Below are positions 10,070-15,850 of a stretch of 64,000 nucleotides of DNA, piece by piece. Every line of letters starts with the position of its first letter. Within the stretch, counting starts at the first letter, position 1. The stretch is from the IMG/VR virus record IMGVR_UViG_3300044846_005229, positions 62,001 through 126,000 of that record, one strand, 5' to 3'. Made by a program: the position numbers and the translations under genes. The notes beneath the pieces were generated by a model. It had not been told where the DNA came from and made no database searches. It saw only the letters and a list, made by a program, of their open reading frames with translations.

Positions 10070-13000
10070 TCAGGACAAGATGTTGGTGATCATAGCGCCA
10101 GAACCGATAAGACCAGATGCACCGAGGCCAACCAAGTTAACCACACGTTCGATGGTGATTTCAGCACGCACGACACGGCGTTCGCGAATGTAGTACTCCA
10201 ATTTGTTATCGTAAAGGCTCTTTATCCCTTGCTTCTGCATGTTTCTATGCAGTTCAGACTATATCATCGTTTTGTAAACAAAACGTCAGGCGCTCGTGGA
10301 TTGTTCACCTGTTCTAGGCTACTTAATCTAGTCGTTGGACCTTGCTTTTATCCCTAAAAGCCTTGGCTGCTGATTGCCTTGTGTTTCAAGGAATTCACTC
10401 CTGAAACCGTCAGGTTTCCCAGCAATTCACCTAATTTCTTTTTATGTCAGACCCCAGTAGTTAAGGACGGACAGCGGGTGTTCCTGTGAGTTGATCATTT
10501 TTGTTAGCGTGAAGGTTATTTATCCTCCACTTCTTCACATTTCTGCAAAGATCAGACTATATCTTCTTCCTTGAAATTCCTTATAAACCTTTGAAGAGTT
10601 TTTGACCTAAACCCGTTTTTCTTTGTGTCCAGATTTAATAATTGACCTAAGAGTATGTCCCCAGGTTTGTTATTTTCAATCCATACTTGTCTAATCTTAT
10701 CCTTCATTCCCTCCAAGTCTTTATTAGAGTTTGGGTGAGCATAACCCCTAGGGGTATTTGAAGAATTTAATCTTGCCTTTGAGATATTCATCCGCCTCTC
10801 TGGTGTCAATGATACACCTTTTAGAGACTCGGCAATACGAAAATTATGGGATTTAGACCTGACATAGTTTTTACGGAGAAATTCGTAGATTCTCTCACCC
10901 CCGACTGAACTCATTCTGAATACTGCATACCATAGACCTTCATGGTCAAGGTACATTTTATTCAAAAGGCGGTGAAGTATAAAGTGTTGCCTCAAGGTGG
11001 GGTAGCACAGATTTTCAGGGTCCGTTTTACTTCCGCCTAGGCATTTTGGAACTATGTGGTGCTCTTCAGTTTTGTGGGACACAGGACGAGTTTTGGGGCA
11101 TTGGTAAATTATTTGCCAATACCACTTTTCCCATTTATTAAGAAAGTGACATTCAAGGAGTGGGGCGCTCGTGGATGGGTTATTATTTTCGGTATTCACC
11201 ATCTAGTCGTTGAACCTTTTGACTACAACTCTATTATAGCATAGAGTCCGAAATAGTCAACTTGGCTGCTGATTACCATAGCTTTCAAACTCTCGTTTGA
11301 AGCCGTAGGCTTCCCAGCAATTCACCCCATTGATCTGCGGATCAGGCAGATAATTTGACGTTACCGTCAAACCACGCATTCAACTCGTTTGAAAGAAACG
11401 ATGTTATTAACATACGTGTAACTGAAGGACGGAGTCGCAGCATTAGCACCACCCGCAGGCATGATCGAATCAGAAGGGCCGTTGGGGCTGTAGAACAGGA
11501 GGATGCCATTGGCGGGGAAGACAGGCTGCAAGGAGCCGTCGTTGGCCAAATAACGCCCTTCAGCTACGCGCAGGCCACGCTCAAGACCGAAGTAGCGAGC
11601 GATGACATCTGTGTCGATGCTATCGGCGGAAGTGTACTTGATACGATCAAGGATCGCTTCGTTGGTCAGCAAGAGGTCGAAAACCGAAGTTCCAAGAACA
11701 GCGGAGTTCGGACGAATGCCGATCTGGTTGGCAACAGCACGCTTCAGAGTCAGGATGTCCTCAATGGGATTAGAGGTTGCACCAGACCATGCGGCAGGGC
11801 CAGTGGCTGTGCCATAAGCGGTGTTGAAGGCGGTCCAGGTTGTAAAACCAAGACCAGTTTGTGAGCCAGGAGTCCCATTGTAGGGCTCGTATGGATTGTA
11901 GCTGCCAGTCACTGAAACAGCTTGAGCAACGGTGTACTCGTAGCTGTTCATCCATTATGTTATCGCGAGGGCTCTTTATCCCTTGCTTCTGCATGTTTCT
12001 ATGCAGTTCAGACTATATCATCGTTTTGTAAACAAAACGTCAGGCGCTCGTGTCAGCTTCATTACTGTTCTAGTAGTATGCTGTTAGTCGTTGAACGTTC
12101 CGTCAATCCCTTGACGGCTTCGCTGCTGATTACCATAGCTTTCAAACTCTCGTTTGAAGCCGTAGGCTTCCCAGCAATTCACCCAATTTTCTAAATGAGA
12201 TCAATCTCATAGGGCCAATGTGTTTAGCCTAGACATCGCATTGCGAGTCTCGACGGCGCGTAGCATTTGTTAACTCAGCGGCTCTTTATCCACTGATTCA
12301 TTACCTTGTCGTTGGTAATGTTCAGACTATATTATTGCCCCACTATGTACACGATTACTGTACTTTGTAAGACATTGGGCGCTCGTGTCAGCTTCATTAC
12401 TGTTCTAGTAGTATGCTGTTAGTCGTTGAACGTTCGTTTTCTCCCGAAAACGCTTCGCTGCTGATTGCCCACGCGGGGGTTCCAGCAATTCACCCAATTT
12501 AGAGTGGACCTACGCTGCGATCGAAATCGTTCGTAAAAAATAATCCACTTGTGCAGGACCTTCTCCTGCGTTCTCGATTCAATAATGTTATCGCAAAGGC
12601 TCTTTATCCTTTACTTCTCTCTGTTTCCAGAAAGTTCAGACTATATCTTCACCCTTATCAGGGTGCTGGGCGCTCGTGTCAGCTTCATTACTGTTCTAGT
12701 AGTATGCTGTTAGTCGTTGGACCTTGCTTTTATCCCTAAAAGCCTTGGCTGCTGATTACCATAGCATCAAACTTTCGTTTGAAGCCGTAGGCTTCCCAGC
12801 AATTCACCCAGTTTTTCTATCAGTTTTTCAACTGACGGAGGCTATCGATCTAACCTCTTCCAAGGTTGTTATCACAAAGGCTCTTTATCCTTTGCTTCTG
12901 TAAATTTACCATCTTTACAGTTCAGACTATATCACCACCCATTTTTGAATGATATCCAATCTAAGTCTTTTGAAGGTACCCAACCTTGCTCAAATTTACG

Positions 13001-15850
13001 AACCATGCGGGACACAGAAGTTGATCTTCTTACTCCCACTAAAGTTGATAGCTTTACTCCACCACATCTATGGTGAAGCCACACATTATAAATTTGATCG
13101 GCGATCATCCAAAGATTTTTGGCTTGTCTACTTGTGGATGTAGCCGTGTTTCTATATGGGGGTATATTATAACCGTGCTTAGAAACAATACTCTTTCCTA
13201 AATTAGGGAGCTTTGTGTAAGCTTTAACTAAATGAGGATGCTTAGTGTTATTCAAAAACCTAGTTATACTTCTAGCTATAAACGGGGTCATTTCCATTTT
13301 ACCTAATAAAAGATGTAGAATGTAATGTTCCCTCGGAGTTAAAGTAACTTTCCAGTGTCGATCTATATGCTCCCAGTTTTTGGGAAATAAGCATTCTGGG
13401 ATGACGTGGTGTTCTTCTACTGAGCCTTTAAGATAGCTAGACCCGTTGGTCCTTCTTTTTTCGACTTTTTGGATTATACTCCAATACCACTTCTCATATT
13501 TACTTGAATAGTGGCAAGTTAGGTGTTGGGCGCTCGTGGATGGGTTATTATTTTCGGTATTCACCATCTAGTCGTTGAACCTTTTGACTACATTCCCATT
13601 ATAGCATGGGAACCGAAATAGTCAACTTGGCTGCTGATTGGCCATTAAGTTGGAGGCTTTCCAGCAATTCACCCTATTATTCTTACCGCGCTAACTAGGC
13701 AACGGCAAGGCCCAAAGATTTAGGCAATTCCCATGCGACCACTTCCTGCTCCAGAGCATAGGGCTCGGAGTCGTAACGGCTTTGGACGTAGGGGATGTTT
13801 GTCATTTGTTAACGCAAAGGCTCTTTATCCCTTGCTTCTACATGTTTCCATGTAGGTCAGACTATATCTTTGCCTTACATTACCATGTAGGGCATTGGGC
13901 GCTCGTGGATTGTTCACCTGTTCTAGGCTACTTAATCTAGTCGTTGAACCTTGCTTTTATCCCTAAAAGCCTTGGCTGCTGATTACCATAGCTTTCAAAC
14001 TCTCGTTTGAAGCCGTAGGCTTCCCAGCAATTCACCCAATTTATTTACGGCACAAACTAATTACCGTAAGCACGACGGAAGTCGTTGATAGCAACACCAT
14101 GTTATCGTAGAGACTCTTTATTCCCTACCTCTGCATGTTTCTATGCAGTTCAGACTATATCATCGTTTTGTAAACAAAACGTCGGGCGCTCGTGGATTTT
14201 TCACCTGTTCTAGGCTACTTAATCTAGTCGTTGAACCTTGCTTTTATCCCTAAAAGCCTTGGCTGCTGATTTCCCTCGCCTTTACGTTAGGGGTTCCCAG
14301 CAATTCACCCAATTTTACAACAGCAAGCTATTTACTGTTCCTTCAATTATGTTATCGCAGGGGCTCTTTATCCCTTGCTTCTGCATGTTTCTATGCAGTT
14401 CAGACTATATCATCGTTTTGTAAACAAAACGTCAGGCGCTCGTGGAGTTTTCATCTGTTCTAGATTACTAACTCTAGTCGTTGAACCTTGCTTTTATCCC
14501 TAAAAGCCTTGGCTGCTGATTACCATAGCATCAAACTTTCGTTTGAAGCCGTAGGCTTCCCAGCAATTCACCCAATTTTTCATAACCCCTCACGGAGTTA
14601 AGCGGCATATGGAATACCGAAGCGCAGGATACGTCCTGCACGAGTTGGAGTGTCTACCACCGGTGCTATGAATAATATACAAAACTTAACGTTTTGCTCT
14701 GCATGTTTCCATGCAGTTTAGACTATATCATCATCTTTGCCTAAGCAAAGAGTCGGGCGCTCGTGGAAAGATTATTCTTGGGTCAGTCACTTTCTAGTCG
14801 TTGAACCTTCTTACTTCACTCTTATTATAGCAACAAGAGACCCGAAGTAAACTTGGCTGCTGATTGCCTCTTTTGCATAGCAAAAGTAAGGTATCCCAGC
14901 AGTTCACCCGATTATTCGACAGGGGTCACCCCCTGAAGGAACCTCATTGATTCGCAATGTTGGTAGACGGTAGCATGAAACCTTGCGCGAGGGTGGTGAG
15001 ACATTTGTTAACGTAGAGGCTCTTTATCCCCTACCTCTCTTTGTTTCCAAAGAGTTCAGACTATATCATCGTTTTGTAAACAAAACGCCCGGCGCTCGTG
15101 GATTTTTCACCTGTTCTAGGCTACTTAATCTAGTCGTTGAACGTTCCGTCAATCCCTTGACGGCTTCGCTGCTGATTACCATAGCATCAAACTTTCGTTT
15201 GAAACCGTAGGCTTCCCAGCAATTCACCGGATTTTCTTTGTTAAAAACAAAGCCACTCCTTTAAATGGGCAATATGTTATCGCAAAGGCTCTTTATCCTT
15301 CACTTCTTTACATTTCTGCAAAGGTCAGACTATATCATCATCCTTTAACTCCCATGCTGAGGAGTCAAGGAGCTGGGCGCTCGTGGAGTTTTCATCTGTT
15401 CTAGATTACTAACTCTAGTCGTTGGACCTTGCTTTTATCCCTAAAAGCCTTGGCTGCTGATTGCCTCTTTTGCATAGCAAAAGTAAGGTGTCCCAGCAGT
15501 TCACCCAGTTTTCTGCCATCATTAAAATGACAGGGACCCTAATTAATCCACACCTGCGTAGGTCTGTTGTAGCATTATGTTATCGTAAAGGCTCTTTATC
15601 CTTCACTTCTTTACATTTCTGCAAAGATCAGACTATATCATCAACTTGCAAGCAAGTTGTCGGGCGCTCGTGGATTGTTCACCTGTTCTAGGCTACTTAA
15701 TCTAGTCGTTGAACGTTCGTTTTCTCCCGAAAACGCTTCGCTGCTGATTACCATAGCATCAAACTTTCGTTTGAAACCGTAGGCTTCCCAGCAATTCACC
15801 CGATTTTCATCCCAAGGTTACCCTTGAGCGGAACCGCCATGATTCATCAT
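10070..15850 (-). CDS. Major capsid protein (lambda gpE-like), spliced from 14 exons: 15850-15842, 15572-15546, 15269-15265, 15001-14950, 14672-14616, 14343-14334, 14094-14063, 13802-13722, 12860-12853, 12579-12543, 12263-12226, 11952-11414, 10495-10464, 10198-10070
   Basis: Joined exons total 1056 nt in one open frame, 351 aa: MMNLQQTYAGVDPILTTLAQGFMLPSTNIANFIAPVVDTPTRAGRILRFGKEQFAINDFRRAYGTNIPYVQSRYDSEPYALEQEVVAWELPEEVIENAGEGPAQVDLRAVETRNAMSRLMNSYEY...PSFSYTYQLTGTPAVRPEYYIRERRVVRAEITIERVVNLVGLGASGLIGSGAMITNILS*. The DP.LT..A.G, FGKE.F, W....SNPIEDI and PSF.YTY motifs and the position after portal-protease-decoration fit a gpE-type capsid. Confidence 0.9.
10199..10463 (-). ncRNA. Group I intron 13 of MCP (265 nt)
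   Basis: P/Q/R/S core; P1 UCCU/GGGG; terminal G. Confidence 0.9.
10552..11202 (-). CDS. Intron-encoded HNH homing endonuclease with NUMOD3-like DNA-binding motif
   Basis: EEHHIVPKCLGGS...PENL...RQHFILHRLL; RIAESLKG...RMNISKA; the last codons (DIV*) are the intron S element. Confidence 0.82.
   Translation of the reverse strand: MVNTENNNPSTSAPLLECHFLNKWEKWYWQIIYQCPKTRPVSHKTEEHHIVPKCLGGSKTDPENLCYPTLRQHFILHRLLNKMYLDHEGLWYAVFRMSSVGGERIYEFLRKNYVRSKSHNFRIAESLKGVSLTPERRMNISKARLNSSNTPRGYAHPNSNKDLEGMKDKIRQVWIENNKPGDILLGQLLNLDTKKNGFRSKTLQRFIRNFKEEDIV
11233..11260 (-). promoter_or_regulatory. Sigma70-like promoter inside intron 12 P6 region
   Basis: TTGACT-16nt-TATAAT with extended -10 TG, about 30 nt upstream of the HNH ATG. 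Confidence 0.65.
11953..12225 (-). ncRNA. Group I intron 11 of MCP (273 nt)
   Basis: P/Q/R/S core; P1 GGCU/GGCC; terminal G. Confidence 0.9.
12264..12542 (-). ncRNA. Group I intron 10 of MCP (279 nt)
   Basis: P/Q/R/S core; P1 GUGGAU/GUCCAC; P10 GCGUAG/CUACGC; terminal G. Confidence 0.92.
12580..12852 (-). ncRNA. Group I intron 9 of MCP (273 nt)
   Basis: P/Q/R/S core; P1 GAGGU/GCCUC; P10 UCGAU/AUCGA; terminal G. Confidence 0.9.
12932..13567 (-). CDS. Intron-encoded HNH homing endonuclease
   Basis: EEHHVIPECL...LTPREHYILHLLL HNH-type motif; lies inside intron 8. Confidence 0.8.
   Translation of the reverse strand: MVNTENNNPSTSAQHLTCHYSSKYEKWYWSIIQKVEKRRTNGSSYLKGSVEEHHVIPECLFPKNWEHIDRHWKVTLTPREHYILHLLLGKMEMTPFIARSITRFLNNTKHPHLVKAYTKLPNLGKSIVSKHGYNIPPYRNTATSTSRQAKNLWMIADQIYNVWLHHRCGGVKLSTLVGVRRSTSVSRMVRKFEQGWVPSKDLDWISFKNGW
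13598..13625 (-). promoter_or_regulatory. Sigma70-like promoter inside intron 8 P6 region
   Basis: TTGACT-16nt-TATAAT with extended -10 TG, about 30 nt upstream of the HNH ATG. Confidence 0.65.
13803..14062 (-). ncRNA. Group I intron 7 of MCP (260 nt)
   Basis: P/Q/R/S core; P1 UUACGGU/GCCGUAA; P10 GUUUGU/ACAAAC; terminal G. Confidence 0.92.
14095..14333 (-). ncRNA. Group I intron 6 of MCP (239 nt)
   Basis: P/Q/R/S core; P1 ACAGU/GCUGU; P10 AUAGC/GCUAU; terminal G. Confidence 0.9.
14344..14615 (-). ncRNA. Group I intron 5 of MCP (272 nt)
   Basis: P/Q/R/S core; P1 CGGU/GCCG; terminal G. Confidence 0.9.
14673..14949 (-). ncRNA. Group I intron 4 of MCP (277 nt; terminal A)
   Basis: P/Q/R/S core; P1 GAAU/GUUC; P10 AUGAG pairs with the 3' exon UUCAU; last base is A. 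Confidence 0.85.
15002..15264 (-). ncRNA. Group I intron 3 of MCP (263 nt)
   Basis: P/Q/R/S core; follows the 5-nt exon CCCAT; P1 CCAU/GUGG; terminal G. Confidence 0.88.
15270..15545 (-). ncRNA. Group I intron 2 of MCP (276 nt)
   Basis: P/Q/R/S core; P1 GGAU/GUCC; terminal G. Confidence 0.9.
15573..15841 (-). ncRNA. Group I intron 1 of MCP (269 nt, no ORF)
   Basis: P GGTGAATTGCTGGGAA, Q AATCAGCAG, R GTTCAACGACTA, S ATGATATAGTC; exon ends in U with a P1 U.G pair; terminal G. Confidence 0.9.

Follow-up and report, generated by a model that had tools for sequence, protein, structure and literature searches.

Thirteen group I introns, some flanking exons of only 5 to 10 bases, divide the major capsid gene of a lake cyanophage into 14 pieces

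The major capsid gene of an uncultured lake cyanophage, whose closest isolate is Synechococcus phage S-CBWM1, is interrupted by 13 group I introns of one family, and contigs from lake RNA show the resulting 14 exons joined correctly. The gene (1,056 nt when joined, Phage_cap_E type) lies on the minus strand, from 15850 to 10070, of the 64,000-nt stretch of viral DNA analysed here (the window). We found no phage or bacterial gene with a denser packing of such introns in literature searches and know of none, nor did these searches return an earlier report of the locus. A first-pass annotation, made from the sequence alone, had described exons of 5, 8, 9 and 10 nt and 11 introns packed into the first 356 coding nt, upstream of a 539-nt exon without introns. 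Our analysis confirmed this observation, whereas the interpretation attached to it was only partly supported.

We first searched the window with the Rfam covariance model RF00028, which matched 13 group I introns on the minus strand between 10235 and 15911 and none elsewhere in the 64 kb. Twelve scored above the gathering threshold (57 to 101.6 bits against 50) and the thirteenth, which carries an ORF, scored 46 bits; all three core motifs were present 13 times. Exon borders were then obtained by spliced alignment against the CDS of a contiguous relative, the intron-free contig L004 (1,056 nt). This gave 14 exons of 9, 27, 5, 52, 57, 10, 32, 81, 8, 37, 38, 539, 32 and 129 nt, of which the first 11 sum to 356 nt, in agreement with the first-pass annotation. 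Two further introns (10496-11413 and 10199-10463) lie downstream of the interval it had delimited. A 1-nt ambiguity at the border of exons 11 and 12 was resolved by U(-1)/omega-G and by L005, an 11-intron DNA contig. The joined CDS has a single terminal stop and differs from L004 at 25 nt, 3 of which change an amino acid. An earlier hand-built model, with exon 2 at 13 nt, exon 7 at 35 nt and a canonical G 3′ site for intron 4 (which would insert FCIL or shift the frame), was rejected by the S-CBWM1 protein and the L004 sequence.

In the order of transcription, with introns also named by their CDS site, exon 1 is ATGATGAAT (15850-15842) and includes the start codon. Intron 1 (site 9; 15573-15841, 269 nt, no ORF) scored 98 bits, with P1 GAAU/GUUC and an RNA joint 15571->15841. 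Exon 2 (15546-15572, 27 nt; P1 GGAU/GUCC) is followed by intron 2 (site 36; 15270-15545, 276 nt, 82.6 bits). Exon 3 is CCCAT (15269-15265): RNA contigs carry ATGGG, its reverse complement, between 15001 and 15546, and the exon is contiguous with exon 2 in L005, which lacks intron 36. Intron 3 (site 41; 15002-15264, 263 nt, 89.6 bits) has P1 CCAU/GUGG. Exon 4 (14950-15001, 52 nt) is 71% identical to the S-CBWM1 capsid N-terminus. Intron 4 (site 93; 14673-14949, 277 nt, 93.7 bits) ends in A (omega-A) and lacks the usual 3′ terminal domain; its P10, UUCAU/AUGAG, is 5 bp. Exon 5 (14616-14672, 57 nt) precedes intron 5 (site 150; 14344-14615, 272 nt, 88.1 bits), for which P1 CGGU/GCCG was read by hand. 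Exon 6 is AAGGAACAGT (14343-14334), and RNA contigs carry ACTGTTCCT between 14094 and 14615. Intron 6 (site 160; 14095-14333, 239 nt, 89.7 bits) has P1 AACAGU/GCUGUU, and is followed by exon 7 (14063-14094, 32 nt) and intron 7 (site 192; 13803-14062, 260 nt, 93.6 bits), with a P1 of 7 bp and a P10 of 6 bp.

Exon 8 (13722-13802, 81 nt) is followed by intron 8 (site 273; 12861-13721, 861 nt), the one that scored 46 bits. It carries a putative homing endonuclease ORF (12932-13567, minus strand, 211 aa) lying between the two strands of P7. Exon 9 is GAAGAGGT (12860-12853), and RNA contigs carry ACCTCTTC between 12579 and 13722. Intron 9 (site 281; 12580-12852, 273 nt, 101.6 bits) has P1 GAGGU/GCCUC. 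Exon 10 (12543-12579, 37 nt) precedes intron 10 (site 318; 12264-12542, 279 nt, 57.7 bits), again with a P1 of 7 bp and a P10 of 6 bp; exon 11 (12226-12263, 38 nt) precedes intron 11 (site 356; 11953-12225, 273 nt, 85.7 bits). Exon 12 (11414-11952, 539 nt) encodes the core of the capsid protein. Intron 12 (site 895; 10496-11413, 918 nt, 57 bits; P1 CACGU/GCGUG) carries the second putative endonuclease ORF (10552-11202, minus strand, 216 aa). Exon 13 (10464-10495, 32 nt) differs at 8 of 32 nt from the L004/L005 allele, with an unchanged peptide. Intron 13 (site 927; 10199-10463, 265 nt, 80.6 bits) and exon 14 (10070-10198, 129 nt including the stop codon) complete the gene. A tRNA scan of the window found none.

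The identity of the gene was supported by Pfam Phage_cap_E (PF03864), at 35.3 bits for the large exon and 33.7 bits for the full-length L004 product against a cutoff of 22.9, and by PHROG 1005 (major head protein, E=1e-23). The exon model reproduces a full ORF, 59% identical to the intronless S-CBWM1 capsid protein over the large exon. Both intron ORFs matched PHROG 655 (homing endonuclease), with E=6e-21 for the ORF of intron 8 and E=5e-30 for that of intron 12, and an HNH-type motif (HH..P...N...H..H) is visible in each: EEHHVIPE...N...H..H and EEHHIVPK..GG...N...H..H, respectively. However, Pfam HNH_5 reached only 13 bits against a cutoff of 27.5, and no solved structure matched at E<0.1. 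The count of two endonucleases made by the first-pass annotation is correct for this genome.

We next examined the ribozyme features. RNAalifold on the 11 ORF-less copies gave a consensus fold with P3 to P9.1 and 47 pairs, 29 of which show double changes that keep the pair. The 5′ splice site follows a U forming a U.G wobble with an internal guide in 13 of 13 introns, with a P1 of 4 to 7 bp. An automatic search had picked spurious guides inside P3/P4 for introns 5, 8 and 11, and these were replaced by pairings read by hand. Twelve of 13 introns end in omega-G and an in-frame stop lies upstream of P3 in all 13. Intron 4 represents the only omega-A lineage among 114 unique introns, yet its exons are joined precisely in RNA (joint 14672->14950 in all 4 runs). 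A segment of about 40 nt lies between P7 and P3′ in all copies, where P7.1/P7.2 hairpins sit in subgroup IA, although this was seen by alignment alone, without a subgroup-specific model, and RNAalifold left the segment unpaired.

Splicing occurs in nature. Contigs from four lake metatranscriptomes join the exons, micro-exons included, and the joined mRNA is abundant (depth about 150 in RNA run X1). L004 is identical at 100% to L005 over 2,671 + 1,213 nt of flanks, minus the 11 introns of the latter. The joined form is held at a share of 0.88 to 1.00 only by RNA runs; the best DNA runs hold 0.16 to 0.31, about what the 31-letter words lying inside single exons would give (0.35 by our count), although DNA runs from the very same lakes as the RNA runs may be missing from the index. 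We therefore rejected the reading of L004 as an intron-free DNA allele. The RNA evidence comes from assembled contigs, not raw reads, and mainly from an L005-type allele with 11 introns rather than from the exact 13-intron allele; one run (X2) does, however, join the window-type exon 13 to exons 12 and 14.

To follow the introns in the population, we compared eighty related contigs, which carry 0 to 13 introns at 16 sites. With L004 as reference, the spliced alignment misplaced short pieces in divergent relatives (false 5 to 11 nt exons near sites 75, 87 and 884 to 893, and false gaps at 1046), which were merged or dropped in the matrix; the intron of contigs L050 and L037 is placed only as 889/895. 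For the pairs 9/36, 36/41, 150/160 and 273/281, all four states (both, left only, right only, neither) occurred among relatives. Each intron flanking a micro-exon also occurs alone in a relative and, as the micro-exon letters are present in the mRNA, a twintron reading was rejected. Metagenome contigs can be strain chimeras over long range, but the 5 to 10 nt adjacencies sit within single reads and are not affected.

Relatives carry endonuclease-size versions at 10 occupied sites and the ORFs group by site at nine of them. These ORFs are 58 to 99% identical within a site, with one outlier, and 25 to 50% identical over partial lengths between sites. Size series were observed at single sites, for example 950/918/369/329 nt at site 895. 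No endonuclease-bearing version was seen at sites 75, 150, 160, 192 and 927, and the long site-36 version (952 nt) has a 160-aa ORF with no similarity to the others. Exon co-conversion tracts of about 40 to 130 nt, found in L050, in contig L006 and in the window, sit next to endonuclease-bearing introns and span neighbouring intron sites. In the two clearest tracts, co-conversion removed neighbouring introns rather than adding them.

The first-pass annotation had inferred that each micro-exon must serve both as P10 substrate of the upstream ribozyme and as P1 substrate of the downstream one, possibly imposing a splicing order or allowing exon skipping. The P1 half of this proposal holds: each downstream intron pairs 4 to 6 nt of the micro-exon and ends in a U.G wobble (CCAU/GUGG, AACAGU/GCUGUU and GAGGU/GCCUC). 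The P10 half does not hold: the upstream introns can form only 2, 2 and 1 bp with the micro-exons, so there is little to compete. RNA contigs contain all the micro-exons, and no skipping joint is among the best-supported joints.

We consider it highly likely that these introns were gained site by site through homing during mixed infections. In this view, each ribozyme finds its own 5′ splice site after transcription through its P1 helix, excises itself and ligates the exons. Micro-exons would exist because separate intron lineages have target sites only 5 to 10 nt apart, most of these lineages being served by their own HNH-type homing endonuclease. Most introns would then have lost their endonuclease ORF (11 of the 13 here have none): as nine sites have their own HNH-type endonuclease lineage, the ORF-less introns are best read as decayed copies. 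Homing would drag 40 to 130 nt of flanking exon along, which can add or erase neighbouring introns. The identity and borders of the introns, the joining of exons in vivo, the population mosaic, the site-specific endonuclease lineages and the co-conversion tracts are established by our data, whereas protein-independent self-splicing, endonuclease activity and specificity, and the direction of gains and losses are inferred. The 5′ cores of introns at different sites are up to 99% identical within this genome, so some copies may have arisen, or been homogenised, by exchange between introns.

Two linked readings remain possible, though tentative. First, the site-93 intron would be a natural group I ribozyme that ligates exons accurately without omega-G, its 3′ splice site being set by a 5-bp P10 continuous with P1 and by an A-U pair replacing the usual G.U between the base just 3′ of P7 and omega-1; it would be a natural counterpart of the engineered omega-A introns. 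Second, the capsid gene would be a battlefield of at least nine site-specific endonuclease lineages, with ORF-less introns retained as immunity, so that intron number reflects the history of phage-against-phage conflict. In this immunity view, which does not exclude the site-by-site scenario and which we hold only as a possibility, each ORF-less intron destroys the target site of an endonuclease circulating in competing phages, and the two resident endonucleases act as weapons. In its favour, many site-specific endonuclease lineages co-circulate in the same lakes, ORF-less introns keep an intact, covarying ribozyme structure, and an intron endonuclease has been shown to act in phage-phage competition in PhiPA3 (PMC11620839). 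Nevertheless, no fitness or cleavage data support it in this system, and persistence of ORF-less introns is also expected from the neutral homing cycle, because imprecise loss in an essential gene is lethal.

Intragenic spread, in which one intron colonised new sites within the same gene by reverse splicing into the mRNA or by ectopic conversion with a change of guide sequence, is somewhat more doubtful but likewise not exclusive; many copies would then be paralogues made inside this gene. The 5′ cores of introns at different sites in the window are 96 to 99% identical (0.99 for sites 150/281 and 0.96 for sites 41/356), exceeding the values to same-site introns in distant genomes, and structural modules (P5, P6, P7.1/7.2, P8) are reassorted among copies. 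In contrast, 3′ parts and some whole cores are closest to the same-site intron of distant genomes (site 160 at 0.99/0.96, and the 3′ parts of sites 41, 281 and 318 at 0.92 to 0.98), a pattern which fits site lineages whose cores are homogenised by gene conversion, and the endonucleases are old and site-specific.

The first-pass annotation had further proposed a block ratchet: as micro-exons are too short to resolve recombination, a cut by either of the two endonucleases would convert the whole block, and the 11 ORF-less introns would spread as passengers. The premise is supported, since co-conversion tracts are far longer than the micro-exons; moreover, introns 160, 192 and 273 are missing together in L006 and intron 927 is seen only together with an intron at 895 or 889. 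The conclusion is not supported and appears unlikely. Independent presence and absence of adjacent introns, set beforehand as the refuting outcome, is what the four pairs above show; endonuclease-size versions exist at 10 of the window's 13 sites in the sample, with ORFs grouping by site; distant relatives carry single endonuclease-bearing introns at sites 9, 93, 281 and 303; and the observed multi-site tracts erased introns. Finally, an assembly collapse or a decaying pseudogene is very improbable: although the locus holds 13 direct repeats of about 250 nt, hard to assemble, and one RNA contig is an intron-intron chimera (joint 12084->15703), the same 12.5 kb occurs 100% identical in contigs from two IMG/VR samples, the ORF is intact after splicing with 21 synonymous against 3 replacement differences, the joined mRNA is abundant and ribozyme pairs covary.

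Group I introns with HNH endonucleases occur in Bacillus phages SPO1/SP82, in Staphylococcus phage Twort (orf142, with three introns) and in T4 (td, nrdB, sunY). They share with the present copies a compact ribozyme of 240 to 280 nt with an extra segment between P7 and P3′, an ORF looped out of the core, early in-frame stops and a position in an essential, conserved gene. The only DNA-level hits among isolated phages were short intron matches of 62 to 123 nt, 81.7 to 88.7% identical, to Bacillus and Staphylococcus phages, one of them annotated as a group I intron. Those cases have at most three introns, against 13 in one 1-kb gene here, with exons as short as 5 nt, sixteen sites used across the population and one intron ending in A. 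In cluster J mycobacteriophages, group I introns interrupt capsid and tail genes, with splicing shown (PMC3706429), but they are single, without micro-exons or an intron swarm. In the intron-rich huge gut phages (Jug phages, PMC12880540) and crAss-like phages, many small group I introns and HNH endonucleases interrupt essential genes, with splicing checked by metatranscriptomes; about 18.5 introns are, however, spread over a 360 to 402 kb genome, with genes split into 2 or 3 fragments. Fungal mitochondrial cox1 reservoirs, for example that of Agaricus bisporus (PMC2987802), and the placozoan cox1 micro-exon (PMC5436844) similarly present many group I introns with their own endonucleases in one conserved gene, mosaic presence among strains and very short exons. 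These are organelle genes with large introns that depend on maturases. Their ORFs are mostly of the LAGLIDADG or GIY-YIG types. Here, a virus of bacteria carries small, near-identical ribozymes with HNH-type ORFs, and translation is coupled to transcription.

As a practical warning, gene callers will miss this capsid gene, and a public ‘viral genome’ contig (L004) is in fact a spliced transcript. The locus shows that accurate splicing tolerates exons of 5 nt and 13 ribozymes in one message, which encodes the most highly expressed late protein, and its omega-A intron bears on how 3′ splice sites are chosen. With 16 sites, alleles of 0 to 13 introns, endonucleases matched to sites and visible co-conversion tracts, it constitutes a natural population for studying homing, in which gain, ORF decay, loss and interference between neighbouring introns can be read directly, and which makes testable the question of whether introns protect phage genes from competitors' nucleases.

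We first defined the feature, which lies on the minus strand. The group I intron model of Rfam matched 13 times between 10235 and 15911 and nowhere else in the 64-kb window, and three core motifs each occurred exactly 13 times, all on that strand. The two long copies carry ORFs of 211 and 216 aa, which match PHROG 655, 'homing endonuclease', and show an HNH-type motif; their endonuclease function is predicted from sequence. Both ORFs start with the same 13 residues (MVNTENNNPSTSA; window 13529-13567 and 11164-11202, minus strand), encoded by ribozyme core sequence between P7 and P3′, and both end at the TGA inside the J8/7-P7 motif ATATAGTCTGA, so that each ORF overlaps the catalytic core at both ends. 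The 539-nt piece between the introns matches Phage_cap_E and a PHROG major head protein. Its best match among isolated phages is the intronless capsid gene of Synechococcus phage S-CBWM1, at 58.8% identity, and the neighbouring genes are a head maturation protease and a tail-tube-like protein.

To establish the exon model, the locus was aligned to a contiguous relative (the 1,056-nt CDS of the IMG/VR contig L004) by spliced dynamic programming. This gave 14 exons of 9, 27, 5, 52, 57, 10, 32, 81, 8, 37, 38, 539, 32 and 129 nt. The first 11 exons sum to 356 nt and the four micro-exons are exactly those listed in the first-pass annotation, whose observation is thus confirmed. The joined CDS has one terminal stop and differs from L004 at 25 nt, with 21 synonymous codon changes and 3 amino-acid changes. 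Every intron follows a U that can form a U.G wobble in a P1 of 4 to 7 bp, and twelve introns end in G. All 13 introns (window 10199-15841, minus strand) have an in-frame stop 0 to 15 codons past the 5′ splice site and always upstream of P3; phage introns use such stops to keep ribosomes out of the ribozyme core. The 11 ORF-less copies share a common predicted P3 to P9.1 fold, in which 29 of 47 pairs show compensatory changes.

We then asked whether the introns are removed. IMG/VR holds 80 related loci, one of which, L004 (IMGVR_UViG_3300012770_000549), has no introns. Three results show that this public 'viral genome' contig is a spliced transcript. First, L004 is 100.000% identical over 2,671 nt upstream and 1,213 nt downstream to L005, a related locus with 11 introns lying on a 127-kb contig, and the only difference between the two is the absence of all 11 introns from L004. 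Second, the first 364 nt of the L004 CDS carry 11 exon junctions, and a search of public runs for this stretch found it at a share of 0.88 to 1.00 only in metatranscriptomes (12 RNA runs at 0.38 to 1.00), while the share in the best DNA runs is 0.16 to 0.31; by our count, 31-letter words lying inside single exons would give about 0.35. Third, contigs from four lake metatranscriptomes aligned to the window show joints at every tested intron, and the letters between joints are the reverse complements of CCCAT, GAAGAGGT and AGGAACAGT. This is contig-level evidence, most of it from the 11-intron allele, and only one metatranscriptome run (X2) joins the window-type exon 13 to its neighbours. The last 96 nt of L004 repeat a piece of the capsid CDS, suggesting an assembly chimera. 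Also, one RNA contig (run X1, record 4; joint 12084 to 15703) joins the 3′ half of intron 11 to the 5′ half of intron 1 across 16 shared letters, and is either an assembly chimera through the repeats or a different intron variant. Lower-depth contigs spanning exon-intron borders are present in the same runs, so intron-bearing templates are there too. We conclude that the introns, including those flanking the micro-exons, are removed accurately in nature.

The intron at CDS site 93 (intron 4; window 14673-14949, minus strand, omega position 14673) contrasted with the others. In the window clade it ends in UAUUA and lacks the conserved 3′ domain, whereas all other site-93 introns end in G. Its exons are nevertheless joined exactly in RNA contigs from four runs, and the exon 4 to exon 5 junction in the RNA leaves no alternative placement of the splice sites. 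Among 114 unique introns, only this lineage, which comprises three sequence variants, has omega-A, and only this lineage also has A instead of G directly 3′ of the P7 strand UAGUCU (within GATATAGTCTA, near 14722). In the Tetrahymena intron that position pairs with omega-1 in P9.0. Omega-1 is U in all 13 introns, so the change would turn a G.U pair into an A-U pair. This intron also has a 5-bp P10 contiguous with P1. Contigs retaining intron 4 occur in all four RNA runs, which might fit slower removal.

The first-pass annotation had supposed that each micro-exon must serve both as P10 substrate of the upstream ribozyme and as P1 substrate of the downstream one. The micro-exons indeed supply most of P1 for the downstream intron (4 of 5, 6 of 10 and 5 of 8 nt), but the upstream introns can form only 2, 2 and 1 bp of P10 with them. 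Judged from pairing potential, the predicted conflict between the two roles is therefore weak.

Spliced alignment of all loci gave 16 insertion sites (CDS positions 9, 36, 41, 75, 93, 150, 160, 192, 273, 281, 303, 318, 356, 889, 895 and 927), with 0 to 13 introns per allele. Sites not occupied in the window include site about 75, which holds a further small group I intron of 215 nt (L014:1304-1518, Rfam 66 bits; also in the related loci L030, L012, L018, L020-L023 and L026-L029) lacking the J8/7 motif of the main family, as well as site 303 (L005, L050, L016 and others) and site about 889 (L037, L050). All 16 sites cluster in the first 356 nt and in 889 to 927: none of the 80 loci has an intron in the central 533 nt (CDS positions 357-888, window 11421-11951), which may reflect target conservation or the protein region involved. 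For each pair of introns flanking a micro-exon, all four states occur among distinct haplotypes. For 9/36, separated by a 27-nt exon, both introns were found in 9 haplotypes, the left only in 5, the right only in 2 and neither in 7. The corresponding numbers were 5, 9, 5 and 9 for 36/41 (5 nt), 4, 1, 3 and 24 for 150/160 (10 nt), and 4, 1, 9 and 20 for 273/281 (8 nt). Because these sites are 5 to 10 nt apart, the local states sit within single reads and cannot be produced by long-range chimeric assembly.

Endonuclease-size versions (797 to 1,023 nt) occur at sites 9, 36, 41, 93, 273, 281, 303, 318, 356 and 895, and probably also at 889. Intermediate sizes at several sites suggest ORF decay. 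The ORFs group by site: they are 58 to 99% identical within a site, apart from one divergent ORF at 895, and only 25 to 50% identical, over partial lengths, between sites. The exception is in the related locus L006, whose site-895 intron measures 950 nt (918 nt in the window) and whose endonuclease is only 34 to 37% identical to the other site-895 endonucleases, so a second endonuclease lineage may use this site. Distant relatives (about 78% nt identity) carry single endonuclease-bearing introns at sites 9, 93, 281 or 303.

The first-pass annotation further supposed that exons this short cannot resolve recombination, so that one homing cut would co-convert the whole block. This premise is visible in three alleles. 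The related locus L050 is identical to the window over CDS 1 to 93, becomes donor-like right after its endonuclease-bearing intron at 93 (40/57 to L004, 48 to 49/57 to the 91% clade), returns to window type near position 150 and lacks intron 150. L006 matches the window at 149/150 over CDS 1 to 150 and is donor-like over 151 to 281 (125/131 to the related locus L007, 113/131 to the window), next to its endonuclease-bearing intron at 281; it lacks introns 160, 192 and 273. The window itself has a donor-like tract at 889 to 927 (46/48 to L051, another related locus, 38/48 to L004/L005) beside its endonuclease-bearing intron 12. This explains the 8 differences from the L004/L005 allele in the 32-nt exon 13 (window 10464-10495, minus strand), whose peptide is unchanged. 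The match to L051-type sequence and the position between the endonuclease-bearing intron 12 and intron 13 mark it as a co-conversion tract. Tracts are therefore longer than the micro-exons and do overwrite neighbours, but in the clear cases they removed introns.

The intron cores are mosaics. The 5′ cores of introns at different sites in the window (150/281, 41/356 and 192/150) are 96 to 99% identical, structural modules (P5, P6, P7.1/7.2, P8) are reassorted among copies, and 3′ parts often match the same-site intron of distant genomes. This points to exchange between copies, suggesting gene conversion between introns inside one gene.

Group I introns with HNH endonucleases in essential phage genes have been described, as have a capsid-gene intron in Cluster J mycobacteriophages, intron-rich huge phages and multi-intron mitochondrial cox1 genes with tiny exons. 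We found no report in the literature of a phage gene with this density of introns or with such micro-exons. Of the earlier interpretation, under which the 11 ORF-less introns spread using only two endonucleases, only part is supported, namely co-conversion beyond the micro-exons and their use in P1. Removal of the introns, at the level of contigs, and the mosaic of presence and absence are shown, whereas endonuclease activity and the course of gain and decay are inferred from sequence. The ORF-less introns of the window do not need to be passengers of the two resident endonucleases, and are best explained as decayed descendants of site-specific mobile introns.
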